The notes: generated by a model from the sequence alone, not told the origin. DNA of 64,000 bases from Adineta vaga (GCA_021613535.1 CP075495.1:8742001-8806000), one strand, 5' to 3'. Numbered from the stretch's first letter, positions 16,183 to 63,155 are shown. Made by a program: numbers and translations.

Positions 16183-16442
16183 CTAAAATAAGAAATCATC
16201 GTTACTGACATTACTAAGTATGAACAGTTATTTTATCAAATCAATACTTTGAATACATTGAAGAAATTATATGAAAATCAACACACATTTTCTATTCTTA
16301 AAAAATACATAAGAACAAAATATCTACCCAAATATACAAACATGCTAAAAAAAAAACAATCATACATTTCTACAATATTCTTGACTTTTGTTTATTTGTT
16401 AATGTTGATCTTGAGTAAAGCAAAATAATATCTCTCATATTC

Positions 16443-26689: not shown

Positions 26690-28276
26690 ATGGGCAAAGA
26701 TTATTATAAAATCTTAGGTAAATAATAGTTATTTTTTTGAAAACTAGAAACTTTCTTGGTTCATTTTCATATTTCTCTAGGTTTAACCAAAGGTGCCACT
26801 GATGATGATATAAAAAAAGCTTATCGAAAACTGTAAGTAAATAAAATAGTTTCATATGATGTGAGAGATTCACAAGGCTTATTCATTTAGTGCGCTTAAA
26901 TATCATCCAGATAAGAATAAAGAGGCAGGTGCCGAAGAAAAATTTAAAGAAGTTGCAGAAGCTTATGAAGTTCTATCCGATCCAAAAAAGAAAGAAATCT
27001 TTGATAAATACGGTGAAGAAGGTACGATACATAACTGAATGATATTCTTTGATGAATTCATATATATATATATGTGTCTATCTATCTATCTATCTATAAA
27101 TATATTTAGGTTTGAAAGCCGGTGGTGGTGGTGGCGGTGGTCCCGGTGCAGCAGGCCAACAATTCTTCTATTCCAATGTTGATCCACATCAAACATTTCG
27201 CATGTTCTTTGTATGTATAGAAGAAAAGAAGAAATATCTTTCGTTTACATTCGCAGTTTATTCTTTTTATAAATAGAATGGTGCTGATCCATTTGCAATG
27301 TTCTTTGGTGGTGATGGCGATGATGATGATGGACAAGGTGGTGGTTTCGGAGGATTTTCTGGTCTTGGTGGATTTCATTTTGGTGGTGCTGGCATGGGTG
27401 GACGTGGTGGTCCACAAAGTCAAATGCAACGAAAGAAAACACAAGATCCACCTGTTGAACATGAACTATTTGTTTCACTAGAAGAAATTGCATCTGGTAC
27501 AACAAAGAAAATGAAAATTTCACGGAAAGTTCTAAATCCAGATAATCGTACAACACGTATGGAAGATAAAGTATTAACTATTGAAATAAAACCTGGTTGG
27601 AAGCAAGGAACTAAAATCACCTTTCCACGTGAAGGTGATCAAAGTCCATCGACAATACCAGCTGATATTGTATTTATAATTAAAGATAAAAACCATCCAG
27701 TATTTCGACGCGATGGCAGTGATCTTCTCTATACAGCGAAAATTAATCTCAAAGATGTAAGTTTTAAAAATGAGAGAAATGACAAGTAATCAATCATTAT
27801 ATTGTTCGAATGATTACATCATATCGAAAATGTAAAGAAAGAACGAATAGAGTATTACTTAATCGAAAACTGAACGCAATTACATGTATATGTTTCAAAG
27901 AGTGGGAGACAAATAAAAAAAATGAAGGATCGTTTTCTTCTTCAAGTGACTCGATTGAACTTATCAAAATTAGAATATGATGAAAGTCAAGGATGTGATA
28001 AAATGCACTCAAATTTGATGTAATTGTTTATTTTTCTTTTAGGCTTTATGTGGAACAACAATAACTGTTCCTACACTTGAACAATCTCGTGTGCGTAAAT
28101 TACAGTTAAATGAAGTAATTAAACCAACAACAGAAAAACGATTGACCGGCGATGGTCTACCTTTTCCAAAACAACCAACTAAACGCGGAGATATTGTTGT
28201 GAAATTTGATATTAAATTTCCTGATACACTCACTAAAGAACAGAAAGAAGTGATTTCATCCACATTACGTGTCTAA
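26690..28276 (+). CDS. DNAJB4: Class B Hsp40 (DNAJB1/4/5-type), 6 coding exons
   Basis: [10 protein letters not shown]...IKKAYRKL|[29 protein letters not shown] (J domain, HPD); G/F region; [26 protein letters not shown]...[18 protein letters not shown]...PADIVF; [13 protein letters not shown]. Confidence 0.93.
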
Positions 28277-29689: not shown

Positions 29690-32303
29690 ATGTTATCTTC
29701 AAGAGAATTTGTAAGTAGATCTATTTCGTTTGTAATTCATAAAATAAAATCTGTATATTTACTTGAATTAGTTCCTATAAGAATAGGAGAAATACTTTTC
29801 AATAGTATCAAACTTAATGACCATATATTACCAATTGTATCTTCGTCTCTGAGTTAGGAGAATTATTTGAAAAAAAGGAACTCATATATTTTACTTCAAA
29901 ACTATTGTTAATCGAAGAATAATGTATATGAAGATAAGATTCCTTTTTATACTAAAAAATTTTTACTTTGAGTAAAATAAAGCATCCATACTGCACTTCG
30001 ATAATGTTGCATGGAGAAAAAATATAGATTGATATTAGACAACTAGTGACTTAGTCAAATACTGATAAGGTGATAAGGAAGAAAAGTATTAATATGCGTG
30101 TTAATGTCAGATGAAAATTTATGTTACAAGAAAAATGATTCTATTTTAAGAAATACATACTTTTCAATATGTTCCTTTAATATTTGAATATAATTTCTAT
30201 CATGATGGTTCAACTTAAAGACATGGTAAAGAAACGTTTTCTTATTTCTCATTCATTCACTTTAGCATATATGTAAATAAAATTCGATGTTGGAGAGAAA
30301 ATTTTGTTTTTTATTATGCATATTTATGAAGTTTGTCACAGATGCTAAATTCACTTTCGATTATATATTTGAAAACACAAATCAGTACAATGAAAGTGGC
30401 ATTTAAAAGTTTTCGATTACTGGTATGAATTCACACATATATACATACACTCTAGATAAAGTTTTATTTGAGACAATACTGGAAGTATACGTTGAACGAC
30501 GTATAATACTTTCCATATTGTGTAGTGAAAATTGCTCAAGAAAAAGAAATACGAGTTAGTAATTTTAAGGGAGGGAGCAGTTTGTTCTTTTTTTTCATAA
30601 AACAATTTGATGTTTATAAATTTCTTAATAATACAAATAACATGATCTGATAGGATAATCGTATGTAAATAGTAAAAATTGAGTGAGAACATCATTAATA
30701 GCTATATGTATAAACTTTATGTCAACATTGTAGAATAGACATGGAGCCATCCAATAGTAAGAATATCTAATCATCTCTTATCGATGACAATGATGAGAAT
30801 AGGTAACTTTTAAGAATATTTTTAAATCTAACTACTAGATTAGTGCTCGAGATTAAGTGATTTGATGGTAATTGGACTAATTATCACTATACTGAATTAC
30901 TGATCAATATATATACTATCTGTTTATCTCTAACCAGTTTTGAATATCATTGTAGTCTTCAAGCTTCGTTTAGAGAGTTCTTTCTCAGTAAAAATTTATC
31001 GAAAATGATCATTTCTTTCTTCTTCTTTTTCATTCGCTTCTATTATTGTACATAAACTATGATTTCATTACATAGAAACGATCTATTCCAATTGGACTTG
31101 CAATTACTAGTCTTACAATAATTACAATTTTTTACATTGGTACTTCTTCAAACAGTGATTATACTAGTTTTCCAAAATTTCGACTACCTAATGTTAACAA
31201 TCATACCGAATCAGTCGTTTCAACTCGTATCTTTTGTCTCATACTAACATCACCAAAGAACTTTCTTACTCGTGCTAAAGCTATCCATCAAACATGGGCA
31301 TCACGATGTGATCGACACTTTTTTGTCACAGAAAATGCAACAGAAACACTCACATCTGAACAACTCAATTTTACAAAACAGATATCAATTGCACCAATCA
31401 GCAATATCATCCCCGGTTATGATCATTTAACGCAAAAGTCAACATTAGCCTTTTTGTTTGCGTATAAGAATTATGCGAATGATTTTGATTGGTTCATCAA
31501 AGCAGATGATGATACATTTGTGATTGTTGAAAATCTACGAGGATTTTTGAGCAAACAAAATGCATCTGAACCTGTTACATTTGGATATAATTTTAAGGTA
31601 ATTGATTTTGACTTCGTGAAATTTTTTCTTACATGATAACAACTGATGCTAAGAATAATGGTTAACTTGTTTTGAATCGTTGCAGAGTTTTGAAATATAT
31701 TGTCAACTGAAACCTTATCTGAACGATTAATACACAATAAATCTTTTAATCAGATGCTTTATTGTTGAAAAAGTCACCTTTTTTTGACTTTCAATTCGTT
31801 TTTTTTTCATTTACAGGTTATCGTTCCGCAAGGATATCATTCAGGTGGAGCATCCTATGTATTAAGTCAAGAGTCACTACGACGATTTCATCGAGCTCAT
31901 GAAGATTCAACAGCATCATGTCGCACAGATGGTGGTGCCGAAGATGTTGAAATTGCCAAATGTCTTCGTACTCAAGGTGTTTATCCAGGCAAATCAATCG
32001 ATAGTTACAATCGTGAACTATTTCATCCACTTCCATTTGCTGATCATTTTCGTGGCTCATTTCCAGATTGGATGTTTTCGTATGCAGAAAATCCACTACA
32101 AACGGTACCCTACTATTTGACAATTTGAAATGTTTGATTGAATAGTAATGTATTTTGTTTTTCCTTAGAATTATAACTGTTGCAGTGATCAAACGATATC
32201 ATTTCATTATGTGTCGCCTGAAGAACAATACCTAATGCATTTTCTATTATACAAAGTTCGACCAATCTTTCAATTCGAAAAAATTCACGGAAAAGTCTGT
32301 TAG
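29690..32303 (+). CDS. C1GALT1: Core-1 beta-1,3-galactosyltransferase (T-synthase-like), paralog a; exons ~29690-29710, 31076-31597, 31818-32104, 32169-32303
   Basis: MLSSREF|KRSIPIG + TM segment; RIFCLILTSP....RAKAI..TWASRCD; DWFIKADDDTFVIVENLR; GYHSGGASYVLS; EDVEIAKCL; RELFHPL; CCSDQTISFHYVSP. Confidence 0.9.
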
Positions 32304-33732: not shown

Positions 33733-34528
33733 TCACGATACATATTTCATTCCAAGATGATCGATGATGGTACTCAAACCTTCCATGCATTTTCGTAAAT
33801 ATTCACTGATCACTATCGATCGAACGTTATGAACATCGGATGAACAAATGTGATTTAATTTGTTTGAAAATACCAATCGATCATTCATATCATACACTGA
33901 TTGCCATGATTGAGAATACACATTCAGAACATTTCGATATCCACACATCATATCTGTTTTTAAAATAATTTGAATACTTTTGAAGTAATTATCGATTTTT
34001 TGCTCAAAAAAGCCCTTGAGATTACGCAGATCATCGATGCTGTTCGAAAAGTAGATCATTGCATTGTGTGCTTCTAACAACAGCTTTATCAAATACTCCT
34101 AAAAAAACAAGGCATATTTCATAAAGTGTTTCGTCAATTTCATAACTATACTTTGCCGATGTTATTCTGTTGAAAGAAATGAAGATGGTAGTACGAAGAT
34201 GGGAGACTAGCATGAGTGCTGTTCATCTCGATGTTCACATATTGATTTATTTTATCAATTGTTATCCTCTGTTTGATCTACATAATACAGGAGATGACAT
34301 TTCATTTCTGTACAATCACAAATGAACATCACTTACTTCTCGTTCAATCTCGAGTGTTGTTCGAGCAATTTCTTGTGCTTTGCGTGCAATAGTTACGAGT
34401 TCATCTTTGACACACAAGATACCATCATTAATTTGACACGTATCATCAATGATTGATCGTTGTTCACTCAGTGAAATCAAACACACGAATGAAAGATAAA
34501 AAAAGGTAATTTTTGGAAAAAATAACAT
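33733..34528 (-). CDS. Secreted four-helix cytokine/prolactin-like protein, subfamily A copy A1 (exons 34528-34337, 34277-34152, 34098-33733; ~227 aa)
   Basis: Signal peptide MLFFPKITFFYLSFVCLISLS, CQINDGILC loop, canonical phase-0 GT-AG introns giving one open frame, and paralogy with A2/A3/B1/B2. The gene model is solid; the fold and family are inference. Confidence 0.75.
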
Positions 34529-35698
34529 AGATCGAGCTAAAATTTCAATTGTATCGATTTCTTTAGTCAAGTTAAAAGTTTTTTTCGTACTTGTTAACAA
34601 AATTTTCGTTTAGTTGTTGTGTTAGATTTACGGTCGGTATCAGCGGATCAGATGATGTTGGATACAATGTTGTCGAATATATGAGTGTTATAACAATGAG
34701 TTACAATAAGGAAAAACTAATGAGTTTTGTCTCTATTTCTCTCGTAAGAAATTTAACTACTATTCTGAGATTTGGAAAAATCAGTTCATTTAAATACTAA
34801 CCACAGTCAGCCTACGAGTCTTGTATATCCTCCACATAAATCAACAGTATATGATATATTCAAATAAAGTTGTCTCACAGATGTCAATTGGTTCAATAGT
34901 CTGATTCTTATCAGGAACGTGGTTACTTTGTTGCGCATAGTTTGATGTAAAATAAACTTTTTTGATTGACTCGTTATTTGTCTATAGTCACAAATCAAAA
35001 GACAAATATAATCTGTCTATAGGATTGATTCATATTCTTTTTGAGTACTAAATTAATATCGAGGCCGAAATATCTCACGACGATATATATACATGAGTGT
35101 TTTCAGATTGTCAACGCGTATTTAATTATTGAAATCTATATCATAGCACTGTTCAAGTTGCTCTGTGGTTTTATCAATACGTAAGTGTTTGCTATTGTCT
35201 ACAGTTCTAACTTCATTTTAGTTGTCATTACTTTATCCTTTATATTTAATAAATACAATTTCTGTTTTTATGTATCTGTATATGGGTTGTGTCTCATATT
35301 TTTATGAAAGTACATTGATTCAATAAATATGTACTCGAAATGAAGTCATAGAGATAACATTAATGTACACACTTTTACTTCTATTCAAACACGAACTACC
35401 AAAATCATTCTAAATATTAGTTCATATAATCAGGTATATTCACCTCCCTCACTTGTCACTGCCAGGTTTAGTCTTTCCTATCCAATAACTCGCGTATATT
35501 GACATATTTCTATTACAAACTCGACAACTTTTCGTTACCGTTTCTTTTCCATGAATAAAGATGTAGTAAATGCATGGATCTGATTCATCTACGTATCATC
35601 CGCTTCATATTCCAACATTTTTATCAGTCATTTTCATCAGTTAACAGTCTTTATTGAAATCATCATCACCGTCTTCTCACATCATCATATTTAGTTTA

Positions 35699-37112
35699 CT
35701 ACAAAAGTTTCTTTTCAAGAATGTCAACCGTATAGTTGATCAGTTCCATCCATTGTCGTAACAATCGAACAGTAATCACGATTTGAGTATGATAAATGCA
35801 TGATGTTATGTCACGTTTTCGTGTTCTTCCCACCTCGATTCCGTCGATGTCATTGGTTGACGACCATTTTTCTGCATAGGTATGAAGAATATCTCGATAG
35901 TTGCAGATCATACCTTCTTCTAAAAGCTGTTCAACCTGATGAAATAAAGCATTGTCACCATCTTCTTTCGAAGCCGTTTCAGCTTGTCGAAGATTGACAA
36001 TTGATTTGTAGAGATAACTGACTGCATAATCAGCTTCTTTGATCAGATGAACTAGATCACTCTGAACAAAACGAACAAACACGTTCATAGGTGTGAAGAA
36101 GTGAACGAAATGCACTGCTTACTTTATCGATATTGTTCATGTGCATGAACTGATCATGAGTTTTAGATGATGGAAAAGTGATGTTGAGGATGGTTGTTTT
36201 GTAGATGATGTTATTTTCGAGTGTGACCTTGTTTGGATCTCGTCGATGCTAGAAAGAAGATGAATAGATGGGTGATTGTTTGACGAAATGTTGTGCGAAA
36301 GAATATAGTTACAATGTTTTGTTCGATTTGAAGTGTAAGAGGATGGATTTGATTTGCTGTTGTGCGTATTTCTTGGAGTACCTCGCGAGCACAAAGAGTA
36401 ATTGTAGTTGTAGGACAAATATCACGATTCACTTTCCCATGTTCTTTACTGTCTACTGACAGAAACAGATTTACCAAAATGATGAAGATAAAAGTACGCA
36501 TTTGTACCATATTGCACTATATCAACAAAAATAGTGAAGTGCTGATGATTCAGCTTTAACTTTATCACACTATTATTTAAAGTCTATACAATCAGTGAAG
36601 TCCCTGACAGCCGATATTCTGATTTTCTTTCTTAGTACAATAAGATATCACGATCTCTTCTAAAACTGTATGCATAGCTGTCAATTATTGAGTCTCTAAT
36701 ATTCCTTATCCTAAAAAACCATTGCAGTGTAACGCAATAAACTCACACCTTTATACAAATGTATACGATCACTAACTAAACACTTGCACACAGATCGACG
36801 ACGTCGTTGATAAGAACAAAATAACAATTTATCTAATGCTTAACTTATATTTTCTACATAAACTGAGGCTCAGAATAGTAAGTGATCATATCAGCGTTTC
36901 TAAAAGTTTTCATTATCACCACTCAAGGAAAAATGTCAACAGCAGAAACATTCATAAAATACGATCTTATAGCTATTAGATGCATTTCTTCGAACACTAC
37001 ACACATACATCTCTAAATACAATATGAACATTTCTTCATCGTTCTACAGTAGTCTCTTCTCATTCAGAATTATATTAGTTATACAAAAGCGTCTTACCAA
37101 TTTCAAGACCAT
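35699..37112 (-). CDS. Secreted four-helix cytokine/prolactin-like protein, subfamily B copy B1 (exons 37112-37098, 36516-36313, 36248-36123, 36061-35699; ~235 aa)
   Basis: MVLKL|CNMVQMRTFIFIILVNLFLSVDS signal, ICPTTTITLC loop, 126-nt middle exon as in subfamily A, phase-0 introns, AATAAA ~45 nt after the stop. Confidence 0.75.
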
Positions 37113-37192
37113 TTGAAAGCCAACTGAACTGTAGAATTTGATGATCACTGCCACAAATATTCTTTCTGAGTCTTAATAGTCACATTTCACTC

Positions 37193-37202
37193 CTTTTATA
37201 TA
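37193..37202 (-). promoter_or_regulatory. TATA box of B1
   Basis: TATATAAAAG ending 81 nt before the B1 ATG. B2 has CATATAAAAG (44190-44199) at identical spacing although the surrounding sequence has diverged. Confidence 0.6.
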
Positions 37203-37218
37203 CAATCACATTCCCTAT

Positions 37219-37744
37219 AAAACAATCTATATCATGATTATCAAAATCGACAACACTGTTGACATGATATTTCTGGTATAAAAACCAACGTCGTTGACGT
37301 CGCATTCTACGTTTATTGTCTTGTGATTATGGCGTTTGTTTTTGTGCTTAACTTGGAAAAATACGAGATCGACTATATTTTTTTGAGAGTTGGACATAGA
37401 AATGAAATGATGGATGATGAACAAATATTGTTGTCTTCATTTTAGACGCAACAGTTGATATGAGTTTCTTGGAAAGAAAGTGAAAAAGAGCGGTTAATAA
37501 ATACATGATGATGGAAAAAAGAAGAAGATTAAGGCGAATTAGGTGGAAAGAGTCGTGTTTTCAGACATAGATGTGATAATGAAAGTGGTATGATATTTTA
37601 GTTCTGAAGAAAGATGCTGTATGATTTGTTAAGTGTAAATGAAGGCTGATATTGTAGTGGAGAGATGAATCTGATATGAAAAGAGAAGAAGTGTAAGATG
37701 AATGAGTATTGACAACATTTACTTAGATTTATTCAAAATTGAAA
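37219..37744. repeat. Near-identical duplicated upstream block of B1 (second copy ~44258-44784, upstream of B2)
   Basis: Direct sequence match from aaacaatctatatcatgattatc to attcaaaattgaaat, with only scattered substitutions. Confidence 0.9.
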
Positions 37745-39121
37745 TCTATGGATAGTGTAATAAATATGTATAATAGTATAATTTCGAATAGTCTAGTTCA
37801 CCACTGGTATTCACAATACTTATTCTGACTGAAGTTCTCGGAAAAGAAAAGGATTAAAAACACACCCATACTTCGTAGCTTATCTAAAATCTGTATTAAG
37901 TTTCAACTTTGTCCTGAATTTGACAATAGGCTTTACTTTTTTCAGCTTTGAATACTGAAAAACAGAAAATTTACGAGGTTTTAGAAACCAAAACAAAATA
38001 CTGTCACTGTGTTGTTTTTTTAACTTTGGAGAGTGATGACAAACTAAGTTCATTGTTTTGTAGTGCTTAAAAAGTTCGATTTCATAAACACGATTAGAAT
38101 TGTTTTGCAGGATAACTATTTATATGAAAATGCTTTTTCTATTATTGTGTTGATCAAAAAATACCATTTGATCATATCATTTGGAGAATGATTCCGTTTG
38201 AAATGTCTCATCATTGAGATCTAGAATAGATGTTTTGATGCGTATCTTATCGAAAATGAGATAGTAAATCATTTCAAAGATAACACATGGAATAACAGTT
38301 CACCATACATCTTTTATAATCTTATCTTACTATTATGGAGTTATAGAACCGTTAAAAGTAAACTATACTGGATAAGAAAATCAATATAACATTGAAACGT
38401 GTTGTTCATGCTGTTACTAATGAATTTATTCTAGCAATGTAAGAAGAATAATATCTGTCAAACTTAGCATGCCATTTCATATATAGATAACAGTAATACA
38501 AACGAGAATTAACTTTAGTTCGTAAAGAAGTAAAAATCCCTTTTAATTGTAGATTTTAATCATGACGATTTTCAGAATGGCTTATATAAGAATAGTTGCA
38601 GTAGAAGTAACTTAGACTATTTGAGAAATGAAAAAAAAACAAATGCATAAGAAAAATTAGTAAAGACATTACAAAGAGTAAACGAAACAATTTTATCCAT
38701 GTATATTATAGTATAATTTTCAAGATACTCAACTAGTTATTATCTTCTGACTACGAATCCTCATACTAATTGATTCAACTGGAAGTCTATCAAGAGGATA
38801 GTGACACTAGCTCCTTATGTTAGATAGCATTCGTGGGACTATAATTGTCTTAATAAACAAACCAGATCGTTTTGATACATTCAATCCTCTAAACAACATC
38901 AACAATGCTTTTAGGACAACTATATATTTGAGATACACGAGACGAATCTTATTTAACTTTTGTTTTGATCATTAAGTCAGTAACTCTTCAAATGCTAATT
39001 AATATTAGTAGTCTAGTTGTACTACTCTGTTTACACGAACGCGCATCAATCTTCAATTTGATGATTACTGTGATGAATACAAATACCGCAGTTATCCTAT
39101 AGACAATTCCTATATTTACAT

Positions 39122-40800
39122 ATCTTTCTTTATTCGATAAACAAACAAACAAACAAAAATATCAACATTGCATTTACGACATATCATTCACAAAAAGCGA
39201 TCACATCACATCTTGATTTATGTTACTGAACCTGCAGAATACTCATCAAACATCAACAAAATCACTAACCAAGTTTCCCTTCCAGTTTTCCAATCACAGC
39301 AGTCAAATCTTCCATCCACTGCCAAAGGTGTCTACCTATCACAATCGATCGAACACTATGAACATCAGACGAATCAGAATGAATCATCTTCGAAAATTCG
39401 ATTCGATCATTGACTTCATACATTGATTGCCATGATTGAGAATACACATACAATACATTTCGATATCGACAAATTATTTGATCTTTCAGACTTGTCTGAA
39501 TCTTCTTAAAACGATCATCAATTTTTTGTGCAAAAAAATCGTCGAGATGACGCAGATCATCGATGGTATTCGAAAAGTAGATCATTGCATTGTGTGCTTC
39601 TAACAACAGCTTTATCAAATACTCCTGAAAAACAAGGCATATTTCATAAAGTGTTTCGTCAATTTCATAACTATACTTTGCCGATGTTACTCTTTTGAAA
39701 GAAATGAAGATGGTAGTACAAAGATGGGAGACTAGCATGAGTGCTGTTCATCTCGATGTTCACATATTTATTTAGTGTACCCATTGTTATCCTCTGTTTG
39801 ATCTACATAATATACAAGATGACATTTCATTTCTGTACAATCACAAATGAACATCACTTACTTCTTGTTCAATCTCGAGTGTTGTTCGAGCAATTTCTTG
39901 TGCTTTGCGGGCAATAGTTGCAAGTTCATCTTTGACACATAACAGACCACGATTAATTTGACACATGTGATCATTGATTGATCCTTGTTCACTCAGTGAA
40001 ATCACAAATACAAAGTAAACAATAATGGTAATAAGTATCATGTTCATGGATGCCACAGGCATTGATTCAACTAAAACACACAGAGATCATCGCATTGTTT
40101 CATTGTTCTATCTCATGTTTAACATTCGGTTGTTCTTACTTTGCTAATATTTTGAATGGTGAGTCTAGCTCTTGGTTCAGATCAACAGACGATCAACGTC
40201 GAAAGTAGAAAAGAATGATCTAAATATCATGTCAAACATGTATTTTGAATATGAATGAATGAATGAATGAATGAATGGAGATGAGAAAAACCACGGAAGA
40301 AGATTCACAACAAGAAAACAGGAAAAAGACACTACCTTCTCTATCTATCTCATTCTCTGGAAATATGATCATCGCTCTGACGATTCAAGTGATAAATCAC
40401 GTAATATATACTGGTAGTAGCTCAAGCTACCCACTCGCTTCACTTATTTTTTTCCAAAATCAGTGTTTGATGAAGTCAAGTTTTGGAAAAAACCTACTTT
40501 TCTTCGATTTTGCAATGAAAGATAAGGCTAGTGTTCAATATGACGCGATTTTTGTTGTGAATGATATTGATTGTCATGATCAATAGTGAGTGATTGGTTC
40601 GATTGAGAAAATATTATGATAGTGAGATAAGAATCGGATAGCAGACATAGTCTGAGTGGGTTTGAAATCTAAGATAAATATCGATAGTATTGATCAAGTC
40701 TGAGTGGTTGTTGCAGTGTTGCGTGGAAGAATGGTGTGTATGATTTTGAGAAAACCCTAGATGAAAATCAGGCAAAAATGTATCAAACGATATGGAAAAA
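39122..40800. repeat. ~1.7 kb segmental duplication carrying A2 with its 3' UTR and upstream region (second copy ~47379-49037 carrying A3)
   Basis: Colinear near-identity with a constant 8253-nt offset across the CDS; the (TGAA)n microsatellite is longer at ~40252-40276 than at ~48499-48512. Confidence 0.92.
39265..40062 (-). CDS. Secreted four-helix cytokine/prolactin-like protein, copy A2 (exons 40062-39862, 39802-39677, 39624-39265; 228 aa)
   Basis: Signal peptide, CQINRGLLC, helix KDELATIARKAQEIARTTLEIEQE|IKQR, loop NSTHASLPSL, and helices EYLIKLLLEAHNAMIYFSNTIDDLR, KIDDRFKKIQTSLKDQIICRYRNVL, RSIVIGRHLWQWMEDLTAVIGKL. Confidence 0.75.
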
Positions 40801-41131
40801 TCGTAGATTCTCATAATCATGGTGGAATACGAAAGTTTAAATTGAAAGTAGTTTGCTACAATGAGAATTCAGTTTACCACTGCTGATCGTATTATCCACT
40901 TTATTTACGTGAAAACAAAAAATAGTTTCCACTATATTATATGATTCCTTGCTATTGTATGAACTTACCGAGACAAAAAATATAGTGTAATGACATTAAA
41001 ATGCCTCAAATTTTAAATAATCATAATGATGCGAAACTGTCACAAAATGTCGTTCAGAAAGATCATTAAAATGATTCATTTTTTAGTTGTGAAAATGGTT
41101 TTGAAGATGACAAAGTAATGCTTACGATAAA

Positions 41132-41287
41132 TTCGTTTTTCCTGATAGTTTCACATCATTATAATTATTTCGATAACAGCTACATATACTTATTTGACCA
41201 ATGCTAGAAAACTGTTTTGTAGCCGATGCATGACTCTACCTAGTATCGAAATAATTATAATGGTGTGAAACTATCAGAAAAAACGAA
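41132..41287. mobile_element. Small inverted-repeat (MITE-like) element, ~44-bp arms
   Basis: ttcgtttttcctgatagtttcacatcattataattatttcgata (41132-41175) is the near-perfect reverse complement of tatcgaaataattataatggtgtgaaactatcagaaaaaacgaa (41244-41287). Confidence 0.65.
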
Positions 41288-41619
41288 GCTAACACGAAAA
41301 ACAAAGATTTAATTATAAAATCTAAGAAGATATATCCTGTCCAAAAAAAACTAGTCCATTCGATTCAGAATTTAATTCTGCACTGAATAGTGATACTTTT
41401 ATTCACGGGACAAGCTTTGGAAAAATAGTCACGCATATCTTTATTTTTCTCCTATGCAAGAGAAAACATAGATAAACATTTTCCAAAGCTTGTCCCTTGA
41501 ATAAAAGTATCACCATTCGATGCAGAATTGAGTTCTGAATCAAAAGGACTAGTTTTTATGAACGGGACATATTTTCTTAAATTTTCTAATTAAGTCTTTG
41601 TTTTTCGTGCTGGCTCCGT
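41283..41619. mobile_element. Foldback/MITE-like element, ~140-bp imperfect inverted arms around a ~50-bp spacer
   Basis: Left arm acgaagctaacacgaaaaacaaag...gggacaagctttggaaaa pairs with right arm ttttccaaagcttgtccc...ctttgtttttcgtgctggctccgt. No coding capacity. Confidence 0.7.
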
Positions 41620-43145
41620 CGTACTAGCATCAAATCAATGAAGGGGAACAATGAAAAAACTCTGGAGAGAGAGTATATATATAATAAGTTTATTACCAAT
41701 TGGATACATTATAGAAGAACTTAAAATACAGGAAAATTTAGTTTTCATAAGATATATTAAAATTTTACTTTTTCGCAATAATATTCCAAAACTTTTAAAT
41801 TTGGACTTTAGCTATAACCGATATCGGAAGCTATGATGACTATTTAATTCTCTATAGGAATGTGCTTAGAATTTAGGTTTTACTCGTAATATCCAGAAAT
41901 TGCTTTCTATATCATCTTTGTTATAGATTCAACAATGACGACATATTTCGTCGCTGTAGAAAGGTTTCATTTCTTTCCAGTCAGATAATACAGTCTTATA
42001 GCGTTAGATCTTTCGTATATAGTGCGATGCTGATTCAATAAAGACAGAAGAAATTCGACACCGTTAAAAATTTCGAAGAATTTCAAGTAAAGCGAATCGT
42101 TTCCCAGAAAAAAATTTGAGTTCAGTGGTGTTATGAAGCCTAAAATTCTTTCAGATTCGACAGTTACCAATTTATTTTATAGAAAATCGTGCACAAGTTA
42201 ACATTTTCTTAAAGAGTTGTTTGTTATGTCGTCGTTCGAATCAAAAAATCTTTTGAACTATTGTGTGTAAATCTATCTTTCATCGGTAAATATTATTAAT
42301 CCATATTATCTTAAAAAACTATGCGTATTGTTTTAATTAATTCAAGACTCAAAAGCTCAAAGTTCGTGATTATGAAAATGATCACAATGGTCCATTTTTA
42401 AGGCATAACGCATTTTAACAATTTCTCTAGTATTTTTCGACAAAAATAGTGCATTTTAACGGACAAAATGGTTTAGCTACGGAAAATAATCCATTTTAAT
42501 GACCATTTCTCCATTATTTACTTGGTAGGGTATAGTCGTACATGCATTTTATCACTTTCACGAAATATCATGAAGTATCATCACATGAAACTGCAAAGTA
42601 ATATCTAGCCTTGAGGATGCCGCGCATTCAGGTATCTAACAAATTTCATGAATTATTCTTATGACTTCAAGATACACTTTAGAAAAAACAGTAGAAGGTT
42701 TTTTTTACAAATGATAATAATAGTTTGTTCGTCGCTCATTTATTTTGATCTGCTAGTTATGCACTTACGCTACGTAAAGGAAATATAATTGTAAATGGGC
42801 TATTTCCTTCTTTTGTTGAAGGTATCTCATTGATACTGATATTGTTAATCAGGACATGCACGTTTTGCATTGGCTTATATATATTGATATAGTAATCTAA
42901 TAAGACTAGAAATTTTCTACGTCTTCGTCCTTTATAAGGAACGAGATAATAAACGCATGGATCTGATTCATCTACGCACCATTGTTTTAGACATTCACAT
43001 ACTTCTTATTCAACTTTGCCATCATTCTTTAGATTCTCATACTCCTGGATTCAGAAATCATGTCATTCATTCATTCACTTTCACCAGTTAACAATCTTTA
43101 TTGAAATCATCATCATCGTCTTCTCACATCATCATATTTAGTTTA

Positions 43146-44109
43146 CTACAAAAGCTTCTTTTCAAGAATGTCAACCGTATAGTTGATCAGTTCCATCCAT
43201 TGTCGTAACAATCGAACAGTAATCACGATTTGAGTATGATAAATACATGATGTTATGTCACGTTTTCGTGTTCTTCCCACCTCGATTCCGTCGATGTCAT
43301 TGGTTGATGACCATTTTTCTGCATAGGTATGAAGAATATCTCGATAGTTGCAGATCATACCTTCTTCTAAAAGCTGTTCAATCCGATGAAATAAAGCATT
43401 GTCACCATCTTCTTTCGAAGCAGTTTCAGCTTGCCGAAGATTGACAATTGATTTGTAGAGATAACTGACTGCATAATCAGCTTCTTTGATCAGATGAACT
43501 AGATCACTCTAAACAAAACGAACAAACACGTTCATAGGTGTGAAGAAATGAACGAAATGCACTGCTTACTTTATCGATATTGTTCATGTGCATGAACTGA
43601 TCATGAGTTTTGGATGATGGAAAAGTGATGTTGAGGATGGTTGTTTTGTAGATGATGTTATTTTCGAGTGTGACCTTGTTTGGATCTCGTCGATGCTAGA
43701 AAGAAGATGAATAGATGGGTGGTTGTTTGACGAAATGTTGTGCGAAAGAATATAGTTACAATGTTTTCTTCGATTTGAAGTGTAAGAGGATGGATTTGAT
43801 TTGCTGTTGTGCGTATTTCTTGGAGTACCTCGCGAGCACAAAGAGTAATTGTAGTTGTAGGACAAATATCACGATTCACTTTCCCCTGTTCTTTACCGTT
43901 CGCAAACAGAAGTAAAAGTATGAGGATAATAGCACGGAATGCTGGCACATTGAATGTCTAAATAAATCGAATTGATACTTCATACATTTATTAGTCATTT
44001 TTTTCCAACGATTATGTTTTCTATTATATCTAGCGTTTATTCGGCGAATATCTCTTCTCATTCAGGTCTACATCAGTTACTAATGATATCTTACCAATTT
44101 CACGATCAT
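43146..44109 (-). CDS. Secreted four-helix cytokine/prolactin-like protein, copy B2 (exons 44109-44095, 43957-43760, 43695-43570, 43508-43146; ~233 aa)
   Basis: MIVKL|TFNVPAFRAIILILLLLFANG signal. The mature region is almost identical to B1 (constant 7447-nt offset) with the same intron positions. Confidence 0.75.
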
Positions 44110-45935
44110 ATCCAAGACAACTGAACCGTACAGTTTAACGGTCACTGCTACAAATATTTTTTCTAATCCGTACCAGCCATATTTCACGCCTTTTATATGC
44201 AATCATCCTCTCTGTCTCTCTTCCTTGGAAATAAGAAACTAACACGATTTGGAATAGAAAACAATCTATATCATGATTATCAAAATCGACAACACTGTTG
44301 ACATGATATTTCTGGTATAAAAAACAACGTCGTTGACGTCGCATTCTACGTTTATTGTCTTGTGATTATGGCGTTTGTGTCTGTGCTTAACTTGGAAAAA
44401 TACGAGATCAACTATATTTTTTTGAGAGTTGGACATAGAAATGAAATGATGGATGATGAACAAATATTGTTGTCTTCATTTTAGACGCAACAGTTGATAT
44501 GAGTTTCTTGGAAAGAAAGTGAAAAAGAGCGGTTAATAAATACATGATGATGGAAAAAAAGAAGAAGATTAAGACGAATTAGGTGGAAAGAGTCGTGTTT
44601 TCAGACATAGATGTGATAATGAAAGTGGTATGATATTTTAGTTCTGAAGAAAGATGCTGTATGATTTGTTAAATGTAAATGAAGGCTGATATTGTAGTGG
44701 AGAGATGAATCTGATATGAAAAGAGAAAAAGTGTAAGATGAATGAGTATTGACAACATTTACTTAGATTTATTCAAAATTGAAATTGATTGAACTTATTA
44801 TGGATAGCGGTTCATATGAAAGTAGTAAAGATTTTCTTAAAAGCGATATGTCGTCAAGCGTAGTTCGTTGAGCTCACGAATAAGTATATAGGGCACGGTA
44901 TAATGAATGCATTTCTTATATGTAGATGATATGTGTTCAAACACGAAAACATACTTGAATGAAGTAGTAGAATGAAATTTTTACTTTACATGTACAGGAA
45001 GCGGAAATTCGTAAGATTAATTTCGAAATGAAAAAACAAACAATTATATTTTATTTCAAAGAGTGGCGTGATTTTATTAAGGATCACAGGGAAAAATAGA
45101 TCATAATGTTTTGTTGCATAAAACAGAGAAACGAAAGTGGTGATATCAAGCTTGTTCTTGGCCATTTTCTTTCTAATTTTCCTGTTACTATATTTTTTTA
45201 AAATGAATATAACTAGTTATATTAAAGGGTGTGTCTTTAGTCGACTATAAAAGATGTAATGACATTCGTGAGATCCTTATCTTTCTACGAATGATAACGA
45301 AACCCGAGAGTACAATTTTTATTAAGTCATAGAACAATATACCAAAATTGTGCATTAAGATAAACAACAAAACAAGAAAATATTTGACCTTGTATCGCAG
45401 ATGTGCTTCGCAAAAAATAAACGAAATTAGTTACTAGAAGTTCGTCATTGTTACATACAAACAATGGATGTTTTAACAGCAGAGAACAATGTTATTACAA
45501 GAAACGAACAAATTGGTCAAAACTGATTTTTTTCAAATTTGTTTTCATCGTACAAAACGTTCTCTTTATTCCGTTAAAATTTGTTCGATTTTACACGTGC
45601 AAATATGCGTTTTCGTTTCTTTTCGTTTTCCTATTCGAGGAGAAGAACATTGCATTTATGATTGTGTACATTCAGAACAGTAAAACCTATTGATGGCATT
45701 AAAATGTCCTACTAAAATTTTCGCATAATAGTAAGTTAATCGGAAAAAAATTGTTCGCTTCGAATTCTTCTTTCTTTATACCATACTATAGGAATAATGT
45801 CTTAAAATATATTTATGTTTTCTATAGATTTCATTTGAAAATCAAATATATATGTATAACTTTCTCAACATGATATACATTGATACAGTATAAATTAAGA
45901 TAAAACCACGAAATTCACACGAAACTATTTCAATA

Positions 45936-47105
45936 ATGGATATCGTTTATAGAAACTTGTCTTTTAGGAATAAAATATATTTTATATTAATTGGTATTCT
46001 GCTAATTACTAGCATTTTAGTTACAATCATATATATTCGCAATCATAGAAAGAAATATTCTACGAGTCCATTGGAAATCGATTTCTATGGTGATTATAGT
46101 GATACTCATGTATTAACAACACGTATATGCTGTTTTATATTAACAGCACCAAAGTATTTCCTGACTCGTGCAAAAGCAATTAATGATACATGGGCTTCAC
46201 GATGTGATCGATATTTTTTTGTTTCAGAATATGCGATTGATATGATGACATCCGAAGAACTTAATTTTACTCAGCACATACCAATTGCACCATTGAAAGA
46301 ACTTAATGCTGGTTATACACATTTAACACAAAAATCAACTCTATCATTTATACATGCCTATGAAAATTATCTGAATGATTATGAATGGTTTGTTAAAGCA
46401 GATGATGACACATATTTGGTTGTAGAAAATTTAAAAGCTTTTTTAAGTGAACAAAACGCATCTGAACCCATCACATTTGGATATAATTTCAAAGTAATAA
46501 TTTATTTCTTTGCATGAAAAGTTTAAAAAATGTTACTTGCTATTAAGCAGAAAATAACTAAGACAATAACAGTAAACGTTTTCTTGGAAATCTAGTTGAA
46601 GGAGAATAATTTGAGTTTGTAGCGATATTCCTTCTTGATATAGTTATTTCCTATTTTATTTTTAGATTCTAGTTTCTAAAGGATATCATTCAGGTGGAGC
46701 AGCATACGTACTCAGTCGAGAAGCAGTACGACGATTTTATGAAGCTCATCATAATCCGAACTCAAAATGTCGCAAAGATGGTGGTGCTGAAGATGTTGAA
46801 ATAGCAAAATGTTTACGTAGAGAAGGTGTCTATCCAGGAAAATCATTGGACGATCATAATCGTGAACTGTTTCATCCACTTTCATTCACCGATCATTTTT
46901 ATGGTTCACTTCCTAATTGGTTAGAAAAAAATGCTGAAAATCCATTAAAAGTTGTAAGTATATTCTAATCAGATTATTTCTGTTGATCCAACGATACATA
47001 TTCCATTTTCAGTACTACGATTGTTGTGGTGACCAAACTATTTCTTTTCATTATATTCCGCCTGAAGGTCAATATTTGTTGGATTTTCTAATATATTCAT
47101 CTTGA
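45936..47105 (+). CDS. C1GALT1: Core-1 beta-1,3-galactosyltransferase (T-synthase-like), paralog b, 3 coding exons
   Basis: Type II TM; RICCFILTAP..FLTRAKAINDTWASRCD; EWFVKADDDTYLVVENLK; GYHSGGAAYVLS; EDVEIAKCL; CCGDQTISFHYIPP. Catalytic-domain intron positions are the same as in paralog a. Confidence 0.9.
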
Positions 47106-47517
47106 ATTATATCAAACATCTGACAAACAATTTATTATAGTTATGGCTTCAGTCAAATAACCCGACATGCACATACTTGTTCGATTTTTTATTTTCCTAT
47201 TGTTTAGTTTTAAGTTGGTTATTTATATACTTGTCTATAGTTACTAATCATATCAGTAATCGGCTGTTTCCGCTTCGTTCAATATACCTATTTTAATAAT
47301 GATGACCACTTAATCATCTAATATTCGGGACATTTCCTTCGACCTCTTATGCATATTGTATTCTTCTTATATTTTCTTATCTTTCTTTATTCGATAAACA
47401 AACAAACAAAAATATCAACATTGCATTTACGACATATCATTCACAAAAAGCGATCACATCACATCTTGATTTATGTTACTGAACCTGCAGAATACTCATC
47501 AAACATCAACACAATCA

Positions 47518-48315
47518 CTAAACAAGTTTCCCTTCCAATTTTTCAATCACAGCAGTCAAATCTTCCATCCACTGCCGAAGGTGTCTACCTATCACAATCG
47601 ATCGAACACTATGAACATCAGACGAGTCAGAATGAATCATCTTCGAAAATTCGATTCGATCATTGACTTCATACATTGATTGCCATGATTGAGAATACAC
47701 ATACAATACATTTCGATATCGACAAATCATTTGATCTTTCAGACTTGTCTGAATCTTCTTGAAACGATCATCGATTTTTTGTGCAAAAAAGCCCTTGAGA
47801 TGACGCAGATCATCGATGGTATTCGAAAAGTAGATCATTGCATTGTGTGCTTCTAACAACAGCTTTATCAAATACTCCTGAAAAACAAGGCATATTTCAT
47901 AAAGTGTTTCGTCAATTTCATAACTATACTTTGCCGATGTTACTCTTTTGAAAGAAATGAAGATGGTAGTACAAAGATGGGAGACTAGCATGAGTGCTGT
48001 TCATCTCGATGTTCACATATTTATTTAGTGTACCCATTGTTATCCTCTGTTTGATCTACATAATATACAAGATGACATTTCATTTCTGTACAATCACAAA
48101 TGAACATCACTTACTTCTTGTTCAATCTCGAGTATTGTTCCAGCAATTTCTTGTGCTTTGCGTGCAATAGTTGCAAGTTCATCTTTGACACATAACAGAC
48201 CACGATTAATTTGACACATGTGATCATTGATTGATCCTTGTTCACTCAGTGAAATCACAAATACAAAGTAAACAATAATGGTAATAAGTATCATGTTCAT
48301 GGATGCCACAGGCAT
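47518..48315 (-). CDS. Secreted four-helix cytokine/prolactin-like protein, copy A3 (exons 48315-48115, 48055-47930, 47877-47518; 228 aa)
   Basis: Near-identical to A2 with a few amino-acid changes (RTT>GTI, LDDFF>LKGFF, IIC>MIC, LWQW>LRQW, GKL>EKL, terminal G>V); splice sites intact. Confidence 0.75.
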
Positions 48316-50576
48316 TGATTCAACTAAAACACACAGAGATCATCGCATTGTTTCATTGTTCTATCTCATGTTTAACATTCGATTGTTCTTACTTTGCTAA
48401 TATTTTGAATGGTGAGTCTAGCTCTTGGTTCAGATCAACAGACGATCAACGTCGAAAGTAGAAAAGAATGATCTAAATATCATGTCAAACATGTATTTAT
48501 GAATGAATGAATGGAGATGAGAAAAACCACGGAAGAAGATTCACAACAAGAAAACAGGAAAAAGACACTACCTTCTCTATCTGTCTCTTTCTCTGGAAAT
48601 ATGATCATCGCTCTGACGATTCAAGTGATAAATCACGTAATATATACTGGTAGTAGCTCAAGCTACCCACTCGCTTCACTTATTTTTTTCCAACATCAGT
48701 GTTTGATGAAGTCAAGTTTTGGAAAAAACCTTCTTTTTTTTCGATTTTGCAATGAAAGATAAGGCTAGTGTTCAATATGACGTGATTTTTGTTGTGAATG
48801 ATATTGATTGTCATGATCAATAGTGAGTGATTGGTTCGATTGAGAAAATATTATGATAGTGAGATAAGAATCGGATAGCAGACATAGTCTGAGTGGGTTT
48901 GAAATCTAAGATAAGAATCGATAGTATTGATCAAGTCTGAGTGGTTGTTGCAGTGTTGCGTGGAAGAATGGTGTGTATGATTTTGAGAAAACCCTAGATG
49001 AAAATCAGGCAAAAATGTATCAAACGATATGGAAAAATTCATATTCAAATCGAAAGAGTTTAAGAGGATGTTTCGAAGGAATTTTTTGAAAATTTCTCGA
49101 AAGAAGAAATAGTTGAATTGTTTGGAGTTTTATTTGGTTTTTGCATGTTTTTAGTCTGTGAAATGATATTTAGTTTGATCTGTATGACAGTCAATTGTAC
49201 TTTTACGGAAAAGGAAGAAAGTTTACATGAATTTTTTATTTGCGAAGGAAACATGCGCCCTTGAATATTTGAAAATGTTGTTTATGTCAAATATAATAAC
49301 TGTTGTTTTGGAAGAAATTTGATTCAACTGAAGCCCCTCAGCTCAGTAATCTGTTTTTCAGGATAGAAACGTTTATTATGATGCCTTTTTTATATGAGAA
49401 GGTGTTTGGAATTAGAAGTAACATTTACATTGAGGTAGAATATATGGTATCGATTTTTAAATAAATATTTACATTGTTGTCTACGTGTTTTCTTAGTGAA
49501 CGCGATAAATATAAGAACGTGATACAGATGACCGCATTCTAAATTGTGCTGTATACTTCTTCGAATTTACGTATGATGTGATTTAACTTTTATTTCAATC
49601 TGATTCTGGTATAAAGTTGTAAATAAAATTATTATTATCGCATATCATTAAAGCTGATATATTGCTTTGTCATTTGTAATTGAAAACCTTCATGATTATA
49701 ATAGTCTCAACAGTTATTCAATCTTTTTAGCTTGAAAAATATACTGTTTGAATTTACACATATGCTTGTGAAAGAATCTTCCTAGATATATTTTTCTAAT
49801 GATTGCAATCATTCGTGAATTTATTTGATATACTTCTTAAGATTTAAAAATATCAATAAGAATATAAATAGATTAATAGCAAATTTTCAACTCAAGCCTC
49901 CACAAATTCGTTACTAGAATGTGTTACTGATGTAGAGCGTACTTTTATAGATAGCATATTTTCATATGGTTTGTGCCGAAATCTAAGCGATTAATCTATC
50001 TAGTTTCTTTATCAAATGATTTAGTATTGTAACCATTTTGTAGATCTAATAATGGTAATAGTGGAGGAAGTTTGCTATTGAAGCTTGATGTTCTTTTCTA
50101 TGGTTTCCACAACCAATCATGTAAAAAGAAATTTAATAACTTGCAAGTTGTTGAAAAGGTACAAATATTGATTTTAACAAACAAATATAATGAGGTTTAA
50201 AAGCTATGGACGTAGTTGTTTTTTTTAATAATCTCACTTAATTTACATTCAGTAATGTTCATATTTAGTTCAGTTATAGAAATTCTTTAACGTTTAATAT
50301 TTTCTTGCGCTATTAATTCTCATATTCAGATCAGTGTGAGAAAAACAAACATAAAACACTTCTGATCAGTTAATATGTGCGGGTGTATGAAATGAATTGA
50401 AAACGAATGATATATAGCTTCTGATGATTGCCATGTTTTCTTTTTATTCAGAAACAAAACTAATATATATTTTCAGTTTCCTTATGCTTCCACATAGCTA
50501 ATAGATAGATCATACAAATCAAATATTAGCTTTGCAAGGAAATAACAGGAAGTTGATTTCGATGGTCAAATTAGCT

Positions 50577-52885: not shown

Positions 52886-55287
52886 ATGGAAGGTCTTCCA
52901 TGTTTACCCGGAAATTCATTTCGTGATCCAACAGTATGTATCAGAACTATTTGCAAACGTGTTCTATGATGCAAATATTGATATTTTATAGCAAACTAAT
53001 TTTCATGTCAGTCAGACGCTTGGTGTTAAAAATGGTCATCGCGTTACTAAATGGCCTCAAGTAGGATTAGGTAAGAAAGAATTATATTTATTTTATCAAC
53101 AAATTAATATTTAGTTGATGAGAGAAACAAGATTGATTAAGATATATTGATTTTAGGTGGTACACGAATTAATTACAATCAAATCAGTGAAGATGAATTA
53201 GAACTTCTTCGAAATTATCGTCCAGAACTTACCTATGGCAAATCTGTTACTGGCGTACCTGATAAATTCGTTCCAGCAACATTAGCATTCGATAAAAAAG
53301 TTCTTCGTTTTTTTGGATATTTTAAACAAACAGTACCTGAAAGTCCAAAGGAATACTATCGTGTTCGACCAGTTAAAGTCTTCTATTATCTTGAAGATGA
53401 TAGTTTAGAAATCTTCGAAGAAGTTCAAGAAAATAGTGGTATTCCACAAGGTAAACTAATTCGTCGTCATCGTTTTCCAAAAAATGATCAAGGAGAAACG
53501 TATAACTTTCGTGATATTAATCTTGGTCAAAATTTAGCCGTTTATGGAAAAGTATTTCGTATTTGTGAGTGTGATGCATTTACTCGAGTAAGATAGAAAA
53601 AATTCTTTCTTGTACAATTATAACTTGATTTTGCCAATTCATCTTAGGAATGGCTTGAAAGTGAAGGTATTCATGTTAATCAACCAGAATTGATACCACG
53701 TGATCCATATTTAACGAAACGACACCAAGCAGCAGAATTAAAAACTTATAAAACAAAAAATGATTTCGATAAACTCAAACAATATGTAGAAATGGATCGA
53801 AAAGTTTTACGTTTTTATGCGATATGGGATGATCGAGCACAAATGTTTGGTGAACAACGGGAATTTATTATACAATACTATCTAGTTAATGATACAATGG
53901 AAATACGAGAAGTACATAAAGCAAATGATGGTCGAGATCCATTTCCTATTCTTATTACTCGTCATAAAATTCCCAAAGATCGCTACGATGTCAAAGGTAA
54001 ATTGTTCAAATATATATATTTTTTTTTTCATTGTCTATTTAGGTACATTTCCACATGTCTTTCTTGAATTAAGTGCTACTGAAGTGTCGAATTATTTTAA
54101 ACCATCGGATTTAATGATCGGAAAAACTGTTAATATCTATGGTCGAAATTTTCTCATCTATGATTGTGATATGTTTACAAAAACGTTTTACAGCAAAAAT
54201 TTTGGCGTAACTAATTTTGAACCTATCAAGACAGAAGCAGTACGTCGTGTACATCCAAAAATGGTAAATTTGAATCTTATTATTTTGATATCGAAAGAAA
54301 TAATATCGTTCTGTAGGAAATTCCTCCATATAATGGATTTGGTACATTAGAAGATTCAGTACAAAATTGCCTACGTCTTCAACCTGATCGACCAAAGAAA
54401 GACTATGTTAAATTAATGGAAAATGATCATCGTATACTTCGTTATGAAGCTGTTCTAGTATGAAAAAGGATATGAAATGAATTCATTCAGTTTTTTTTTG
54501 TTCTTCATACATAGGATAGTCCTCGTGAAGATGATAAATTACGTAAATTTGTCATCAGCTATCATCTTGGTGATGATACGATTAGTATTCATGAACCACC
54601 TCAACGTAATTCAGGTATTATTGGTGGACGATTTCTTGAACGTACACGTGTATCAAAACCAGGTATATTCATTGTAGATTTTTAAGTGAAAATCTCTATT
54701 TCTTTGTAAAATAAAAAGGTACTTCAACGGAATATCCCGAATATTATGGTCCATCTGATTTTTCTATTGGAGCAACAGTTGAAGTATTTCGTCAACGTTT
54801 TATTATTCGTTCAGCTGATTTATTTGTCTTAAAATTTGCTGAAGAACATCCCGATCAATTTTCACCAACTGTTCTTCAATCATTACGACAACATTTAAGT
54901 AATGAACCTGGCCGACCAGATGCACGTCTCAGTACCAATATTTATGTGAAACGTAAACCAGGCGATTTCATTCGTTTATATGCCGAAATTCGTAATAAAT
55001 TAAAATCAATGCGTATCACAAATCATGAACAAATTCGACAAATGTTTTTACGTTATGATAGCGATCGAAATGGTTATGTATCTCGAGAAAATATTGTTGA
55101 CATATTTCGACAAATCAATTTACCACTTGAAAATGATATTATTGATGCGGTAAATATTCAATGAAATGGAAATTTTAAATTCTTTATTCTTACATATGTT
55201 TTTTGTTTCTAGATGGTTGCAGAATGTACAACAAACAGTGAAGGAAAAATAAACTTATATGAGTTCTTACGATTCTTTGAAAGTTAA
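52886..55287 (+). CDS. EFHC1: EF-hand domain-containing protein 1 / Rib72 (three DM10 domains + EF-hand), multi-exon
   Basis: [16 protein letters not shown]; [41 protein letters not shown]; [14 protein letters not shown]; [16 protein letters not shown]; [13 protein letters not shown]; EF-hand [12 protein letters not shown]. Confidence 0.94.

Positions 55288-61787: not shown

Positions 61788-63155
<1,368 letters not shown>

Follow-up and report, generated by a model that had tools for sequence, protein, structure and literature searches.

We analysed a window of 64,000 bases from the bdelloid rotifer Adineta vaga (chromosome C2, bases 8742001-8806000), an AT-rich stretch with a G+C content of ~30%. 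From 33733 to 48315 it carries five tandem minus-strand genes of two sequence types, A and B, in the order A1, B1, A2, B2, A3; the cluster belongs to a multigene family specific to bdelloid rotifers. Structure modelling indicates that the true fold of the A and B proteins is very probably the long-chain cytokine bundle. We file the family as one that works like a helical cytokine or hormone and lies outside every known sequence family.

The reading frames of the two types were taken from a six-frame translation of 33-49 kb, and exon borders were fixed by anchoring on conserved peptide ends. The five coding models, with exon coordinates that include the stop codon, are as follows:

33733..34528, minus strand: A1, 227 amino acids; exons 34528-34337, 34277-34152 and 34098-33733
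35699..37112, minus strand: B1, 235 amino acids; exons 37112-37098 (ATG plus four codons), 36516-36313, 36248-36123 and 36061-35699
39265..40062, minus strand: A2, 228 amino acids; exons 40062-39862, 39802-39677 and 39624-39265
43146..44109, minus strand: B2, 233 amino acids; exons 44109-44095 (ATG plus four codons), 43957-43760, 43695-43570 and 43508-43146
47518..48393, minus strand: A3, 228 amino acids; coding exons 48315-48115, 48055-47930 and 47877-47518; 5' untranslated region (UTR) exon ending at 48393, with a 5' UTR intron at 48324-48392

The initial annotation of this DNA had proposed five minus-strand genes spliced into proteins of 227-235 amino acids, and the models could indeed be reconstructed with intact frames and GT-AG, phase-0 introns at the same places in all five genes. 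The middle exon is 126 nucleotides long in each of the five, and the introns on either side of it measure 52-64 nucleotides (59 and 53 in A1). The B genes have an additional 5' intron near the start, of 581 nucleotides in B1 and 137 in B2; translation begins in a 15-nucleotide coding tip of the upstream exon, which is spliced in phase 0 to the large exon. In B2 this large first exon has no in-frame ATG, and the start codon lies in the upstream tip. The claim that A and B are highly diverged yet share the 126-nucleotide exon and the phase-0 intron places also holds, the two types being 29% identical in amino acids over their full length. The spacer between A2 and B2 contains an imperfect palindrome (41132-41619) with arms of ~160-350 nucleotides and 75-79% identity.

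Transcript support comes from Logan contigs of four runs (X1-X4) belonging to two studies; the contigs are taken to be RNA because they are spliced. All three introns of B2 (43509-43569, 43696-43759 and 43958-44094) are seen in them as CT..AC joints, the two outer introns in runs X1-X3 and the 64-nucleotide intron in X1-X4, so that the start-exon junction (43957/44095) is present in three runs from two studies. The joints of A3 are covered by intron 2 in X2 and X3, the intron-1 donor (48115) in X3 and the 5' UTR intron in X3 and X4. In the region of A3 intron 1 (47899-48450), two contigs (X1 record 6 and X4 record 24) are unspliced while other contigs of the same studies are spliced; the unspliced ones reflect either intron retention or genomic DNA in the libraries. 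A spliced X3 contig at 48041-48323 has 14 replaced letters at the start of the 126-nucleotide exon and several more differences, and is probably from a divergent allele, strain or paralog of A3.

GenBank already contains models for part of the cluster. The entry UJR27209.1 (P0001; 'hypothetical protein I4U23_008505') is identical to our A3 model, and UJR27206.1 (P0002, 466 amino acids, from the same cluster as UJR27209.1) is A2 fused to B1 through the small upstream B1 exon, with junctions as in our models: residues 1-227 are A2, 228-238 the upstream B1 exon and 239-466 B1. This fused model (35699-40062) skips the A2 stop codon, and the present gene models correct it. Fusions of B-like with A-like sequences also occur in other bdelloid assemblies (P0003, 449 amino acids; P0139, 566 amino acids); all such fused models are either chimeric predictions or read-through transcripts. 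The basis of the models thus differs from gene to gene: B2 and A3 junctions are found in RNA contigs, A2 and B1 agree with GenBank junctions (as A3 does), and A1 is based on homology, an intact frame and splice sites only, and is recovered by a family profile search of the own genome. The splice models of the initial annotation were in this way borne out, and its description of the locus as previously unannotated was not; because hypothetical-protein models exist for A3 and A2+B1, the locus is better called uncharacterised.

For searches and folding, A3, A2 and B1 were represented by the two GenBank proteins, and the exons were also searched singly; the joined A1 and B2 models were used for identity, substitution-rate and tree calculations. 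A HMMER profile of A3, A2 and B1, run exhaustively against 1.84 billion representative proteins, matches 131 clusters at E<=0.001, 18 of them at E<=1e-30. All named members are bdelloid (A. vaga, A. ricciae, A. steineri, Rotaria socialis, R. magnacalcarata, Rotaria sp. Silwood1 and Didymodactylos carnosus), and many others are exon-sized fragments from unlabelled assemblies. A low-complexity repeat protein (P0062) and a protein of 4382 amino acids with a match of 45 residues only (P0110) were omitted from the family alignment, which holds 133 sequences. A word-indexed protein search with the last exon of A3 matched only the window's own protein.

Within A. vaga, a profile search of the genome finds further paralogs, three on chromosome C5, one on C1 and one on C3, which gives at least 10 genes of the family; several subfamilies extend across Adineta, Rotaria and Didymodactylos. 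The C5 copies have lost intron 1, which leaves exon 1 and the 126-nucleotide exon as one, but retain intron 2 in its usual position; the C1 copy carries both introns. C5 paralogs are located at G000:C5:9800440-9805314 (L005 and L006). The GenBank model of one C5 paralog, UJR21985.1 (P0011, 219 amino acids), seems to use another donor and to leave out ~11 conserved residues ahead of helix B. Maximum-likelihood tree support is 98/96 for the B clade and 91/88 for the A clade, and since both clades include sequences of Adineta and Rotaria, the A/B split is older than these two genera. An 18-kb contig of another assembly (L024) has a B-like and an A-like gene side by side, fused by annotators; in the tree both halves group with Rotaria, and adjacency of A and B genes appears to be conserved between the two genera.

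The motif set listed in the initial annotation is present and conserved across the family: C-x7-C, LPS/FPS, NST/NIT, C.YR..L..Y...W and the WME helix, with the conserved Trp of helix D replaced by Cys in A1. Exactly three cysteines are family-wide in the alignment (C34, C42 and C161, conserved at 97-100%); other family-wide positions are the LCV..L motif at the start of helix A, P93, N106-I107, C.YR..L..YS..W in helix C, W212 and K226. The proposal that the proteins are secreted with a signal peptide fits the N-termini as read from the sequence: in five of five copies a hydrophobic, signal-like segment is followed by small residues, and ~200-205 mature residues remain.

Self-comparison of the DNA places the A2 and A3 blocks at 97% identity over 1.7 kb, B1 and B2 at 97.7% over 0.83 kb, and A1 at 87% to A2/A3. 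At the amino-acid level A2 is 96% identical to A3, and A1 is 69-71% identical to both. The ratio of non-synonymous to synonymous substitution rates (dN/dS) is 0.38 for A2/A3, 0.31 for B1/B2, 0.44-0.48 for A1 against A2/A3 and 0.25-0.39 for A against B. With values of 0.25-0.48 between copies, these are selected coding sequences rather than chance open reading frames; the A and B genes are under moderate purifying selection.

The fold was modelled with AlphaFold2 from the 133-sequence alignment. The mean predicted local distance difference test score (pLDDT) is 87.4 and the predicted template modelling (TM) score is 0.81, and all five AlphaFold2 models have pLDDT values of 84-87. After the signal helix, the model has helices at residues 43-71, 74-91, 96-103, 109-134, 141-169 and 197-226; the long connections span 72-108 and 170-196, and the main helices are 26-30 residues long. 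A Foldseek search of the PDB with this model returns long-chain cytokines (IL-11, G-CSF, IL-6, prolactin, growth hormone and LIF) in all of the top 26 rows. The best matches, IL-11 and G-CSF, have target-normalised TM scores of 0.69-0.79 with a root-mean-square deviation (rmsd) of 3.4-4.7 A. The E-values are weak, 0.03 and up, as is usual for helical proteins.

An all-against-all search with VIA-align 2, which is independent of Foldseek and covered 48,161 representative chains, puts IL-11 first (Z 14.7, rmsd 2.7 A, 159 of 165 residues), then OSM (13.8), LIF (13.8), viral IL-6 (13.5), CNTF (13.4), IL-6 (13.1) and CLCF1 (13.0). Next are IL-27p28 (two entries), placental lactogen (12.3), IL-23p19 and leptin, followed by interferons, growth hormone and IL-12p35. 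The top 12 ranks hold cytokines only; the first unrelated protein is a ZIP transporter (Z 10.4), and Dps/ferritin bundles match only half of the model (~107-228), with Z up to 8.6. The weight of these searches lies in one superfamily filling the top ranks of both, with near-complete coverage in sequence order. A structure search of the ESM-Atlas was uninformative, its library being mostly prokaryotic; the best TM score was 0.41, to half of a ferritin-like protein.

Protein language-model neighbours of A3 and B1 point the same way: the nearest named clusters are only IL6, Hormone_1, LIF_OSM, CNTF, IL11/GCSF and IL12, with scores of 0.90-0.94. Some of these clusters are mollusc or arthropod hypothetical proteins, with weak IL6 or Hormone_1 matches, so that similar uncharacterised proteins exist in other protostomes. 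Since AlphaFold2 confidence, the Foldseek and VIA rankings and the language-model neighbours agree, the predicted fold of a secreted long-chain four-helix cytokine- or hormone-like protein, as first put forward in the initial annotation, is strongly supported. The check by structure prediction and Foldseek gave as best matches exclusively IL-6/gp130-type cytokines and relatives of growth hormone and prolactin.

The odd number of cysteines, the A/B adjacency in two genera and the repeated fusions by annotators prompted us to co-fold the two types. Mature A3 (27-228) and mature B1 (22-228) were used as input, in three runs and with three controls. ESMFold2, which here works without alignments, folds the A3 and B1 chains with pLDDT 82-83. 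The pair has an interface score (ipSAE) of 0.71 versus 0.00-0.01 in the controls, a mark attained by 51 of 78 solved complexes and by two of 108 mismatched pairs; contacts agree at 100% between runs, and the partner pLDDT is 82. The predicted interface is pseudo-symmetric; in both chains it is made up of residues 38-47, 108-112, 168-172 and 223-228, which sit together at one bundle end. Expected error is lowest between A3 Cys42 and B1 Cys40, the second cysteine of C-x7-C in each, and this predicted contact suggests an interchain disulfide and disulfide-linked dimers. If the second cysteine is used between chains, the first and the one in helix C are left for an intrachain bond. Homodimers are as likely as A-B heterodimers, since co-folding cannot tell which members pair.

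Taken together, the most likely mechanism, and one we hold to be probable, is that the A and B proteins are extracellular, probably dimeric, cytokine- or hormone-like ligands that act on a receptor. As secreted proteins of ~200 mature residues, they would adopt the long-chain four-helix bundle in the layout helix A, long AB connection with a short extra helix, helix B, short turn, helix C, long CD loop and helix D. We infer extracellular signalling as cytokine- or hormone-like ligands as the most likely function. Dimers would probably be joined at the bundle end where the conserved LCV motif and the C-terminus meet the first part of helix B and the last part of helix C; the second cysteine of C-x7-C may bond between chains, and the remaining two may fasten the N-terminal segment to helix C, a pattern that we infer from the model. 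The receptor is probably not coupled to canonical JAK/STAT, because no such components are detectable in the A. vaga genome.

Several results weigh against the ligand proposal. At E<=10, Pfam searches of each exon give scattered chance matches and no cytokine family, those of the 133 family members find no IL6, LIF_OSM, CNTF, IL11, GCSF, Hormone_1 or Leptin, and the family profile has no cytokine or related match among all PDB sequences; homology with vertebrate cytokines beyond the shared fold is not shown by any Pfam or PDB sequence signal. As to membership of the long-chain cytokines, a signal peptide and a mature length near the ~160-200 amino acids of that class are read from the sequence, the up-up-down-down bundle with helices of ~25-30 residues and long AB and CD crossovers is found in the model only, and curated Pfam membership is absent. 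The fold is a prediction rather than a solved structure, AlphaFold2 with only A3, A2 and B1 as alignment gives an unusable model (pLDDT 48), and helical models may reach a VIA Z of ~14 by arrangement alone. Secretion comes from reading the N-termini rather than from a dedicated predictor. The dimer is one computational prediction, which supports binding without showing it, and seven of 44 blind pairs of neighbouring genes also pass the co-fold test. Expression is known only from the Logan contigs, which are silent on tissue, timing and level.

The signalling pathway is a further point on this side. Eight Pfam models were searched against the whole 100.8-Mb A. vaga genome in six frames: the STAT domains (STAT_bind, STAT_alpha and STAT_int) have no match, nor do the JAK domains (Jak1_Phl and JAK FERM_F2) or the receptor domains (EpoR_lig-bind, IL6Ra-bind and Lep_receptor_Ig), the last being models that could overlook divergent receptors of invertebrates. 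For the A and B proteins, no candidate receptor emerged. The positive controls behaved as expected of such a search: SH2 has 52 matches, the 129-position Runt model finds two genes in two exon pieces each (E 1e-16 and 6e-9), and the family's own profile recovers all its exons. A canonical STAT should have been detected in this way, and is therefore probably absent or diverged past recognition; the silence of the JAK and receptor models is weaker evidence because they are vertebrate-centred. The absence of STAT and JAK from the six-frame search is strong but not final evidence, and bdelloids may be without canonical JAK/STAT. Our literature searches turned up no paper that treats helical cytokines or JAK/STAT in rotifers, or that states a bdelloid lack of JAK/STAT. 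IL-6-family ligands are reported in vertebrates only and Unpaired (Upd) in insects only, and JAK/STAT is patchy in flatworms and nematodes, with rotifers outside the sample (PMC13203501).

These results bear directly on the explanations that compete with a dimeric ligand of a non-canonical receptor. The initial annotation had called the proteins JAK/STAT ligands, and they could be canonical class I cytokines, binding a Domeless- or gp130-like receptor that contains a cytokine-binding module and using JAK and STAT for their signal. Their best fold matches are gp130-family ligands and their embedding neighbours are IL6, LIF, CNTF and Hormone_1 clusters; every characterised long-chain helical cytokine that we know of uses JAK/STAT. 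All eight pathway domains are nevertheless unmatched in a genome where SH2 and both Runt genes are found, and even allowing that the vertebrate-centred receptor models could miss a divergent receptor or kinase, we consider this explanation improbable. The family is not classed as a JAK/STAT ligand because the signalling components were sought and not detected. Undetectable JAK/STAT components agree better with a sub-case of the ligand proposal in which end-to-end dimers, covalent or not, like those of M-CSF, SCF, Flt3L or IL-34 would cross-link a receptor tyrosine kinase (RTK) or another single-pass receptor, JAK/STAT playing no part. M-CSF activates its RTK as an end-to-end dimer held by a disulfide, and the rotifer proteins have an odd number of conserved cysteines and a predicted pseudo-symmetric end-to-end interface with A3 Cys42 against B1 Cys40; IL-34 is in the VIA list (Z 7.4). 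The structural matches, however, favour the long-chain, normally monomeric gp130-type cytokines over short-chain RTK ligands by a wide margin, and the dimer is an unverified prediction. We regard this sub-case as tentative, at well under even odds.

It is likewise improbable, though a conceivable reading of the same models, that the bundle is cytokine-like or generic and has no part in signalling, the proteins being secreted structural, carrier, adhesive, digestive or defence proteins whose similarity to cytokines is convergent or an artefact. The family is lineage-restricted and shows no homology to cytokines in sequence, structure searches tend to give helical bundles high scores, and tandem expansion with fairly fast evolution (dN/dS up to 0.48) also fits defence or environment-facing proteins. 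The matches, on the other hand, span nearly whole cytokine chains in sequence order and take all of the first 12 places in one method and of the first 26 in the other, independent embeddings of both A and B point to the same families, and up-up-down-down bundles with two long crossover loops are, to our knowledge, nearly confined to cytokines and hormones. Among signalling proteins, the A and B genes might encode long-chain cytokines of the bdelloids' own, as disulfide-linked homo- or heterodimers that act without JAK/STAT, for example through an RTK or a receptor class new to the fold, or alternatively extremely diverged true homologues of IL-6/LIF; we hold this to be possible, if on balance doubtful. 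Were signalling without JAK/STAT true, the cytokine fold would be uncoupled from its always-associated pathway; were the proteins IL-6/LIF homologues, that family would predate the protostome-deuterostome split.

The genes around the cluster include two copies of a glycosyltransferase gene and several others with Pfam matches:

6286-6810: CR6_interact
8111-9253: SNase/Tudor-SN-like
12464-13528: dual-specificity phosphatase
16446-17444, minus strand: SH3 protein
27298-27786: DnaJ_C
~31221-32251, plus strand: older glycosyltransferase copy, adjoining A1 and convergent with it; self-similarity 71-75%
45936..47137, plus strand: Fringe/C1GALT1-like glycosyltransferase gene, convergent with A3; Pfam Fringe E 2.7e-10; spliced RNA contigs
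61991-62683: Forkhead

The Fringe/C1GALT1-like gene was duplicated together with the locus (31.2-32.3 kb and 45.9-47.1 kb) and is a syntenic neighbour, for which no functional partnership is claimed. A non-canonical AA..TT joint in this gene was rejected; it is most simply the GT-AG intron 46494-46665 misplaced by a nearby allelic difference. On contig L024 a convergent Fringe-family gene (15760-16925) comes next after the B-like/A-like pair, and a DM10-domain gene is nearby in both (53889-54347 in the window, 605-3322 in L024). With an A-type gene, a convergent glycosyltransferase gene and a DM10 gene in both places, micro-synteny appears to be conserved across bdelloid genera.

Insect Unpaired proteins are essentially the only ligands outside vertebrates for which the long-chain helical cytokine fold is established. 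The A/B family offers well-supported candidates in Gnathifera/Spiralia, with an alignment deep enough for confident modelling and with paired subfamilies. Should the canonical STAT, JAK and cytokine-receptor domains really be missing from A. vaga, the question becomes what a cytokine-fold ligand would bind without the canonical pathway. Bdelloids also attract interest because they tolerate desiccation and radiation, are asexual and resist pathogens, and their intercellular signalling is almost uncharted.

Among known systems, the rotifer proteins are closest to the IL-6/gp130 family (IL-11, LIF, OSM, CNTF, CLCF1, IL-6 and IL-27p28), with which they share secretion, a mature size of ~180-200 amino acids, four predicted long helices and long AB and CD loops; the best matches have Z of 13-14.7 over 142-167 aligned residues and target-normalised TM scores of 0.72-0.79. 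Conserved cysteines of the rotifer family stand ahead of helix A and within helix C, and in LIF and OSM the N-terminal segment is tied to helix C by disulfides. The rotifer proteins differ in having no detectable sequence similarity to this family, their own three-cysteine pattern (C-x7-C before helix A plus the helix C cysteine), an 18-residue helix inside the AB connection and a predicted end-to-end dimer, and in that searches of the A. vaga genome detected neither a gp130-like receptor nor JAK or STAT. Growth hormone, prolactin and placental lactogen (Hormone_1) also have the long-chain bundle: placental lactogen reaches Z 12.3 and growth hormone 10.3, prolactin chains have query-normalised Foldseek TM scores of 0.45-0.50, and Hormone_1-tagged clusters are the most frequent embedding neighbours. 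Prolactin has a small N-terminal disulfide loop. These hormones nevertheless rank below the gp130-type ligands in both structure searches, have an otherwise different cysteine pattern and are not linked to the rotifer proteins by a Pfam match.

As far as is known, Upd1-3 of Drosophila are the only long-chain helical cytokine-like ligands of protostomes that are well established (see also PMC13203501). Like the A/B family, Upd1-3 have diverged so far that sequence searches do not connect them with vertebrate cytokines. They are bigger proteins than those of the rotifer, and their signal passes through Domeless, Hopscotch and Stat92E; components of these types were not detected in A. vaga. M-CSF, SCF, Flt3L and IL-34 are short-chain bundles, an architecture from which the rotifer proteins, with main helices of 26-30 residues, depart; only IL-34 is listed among the structural matches, 5-7 Z units below the long-chain cytokines. 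They do, however, form dimers of four-helix bundles, and the interchain disulfide of M-CSF resembles the cysteine pairing predicted for A3 and B1.

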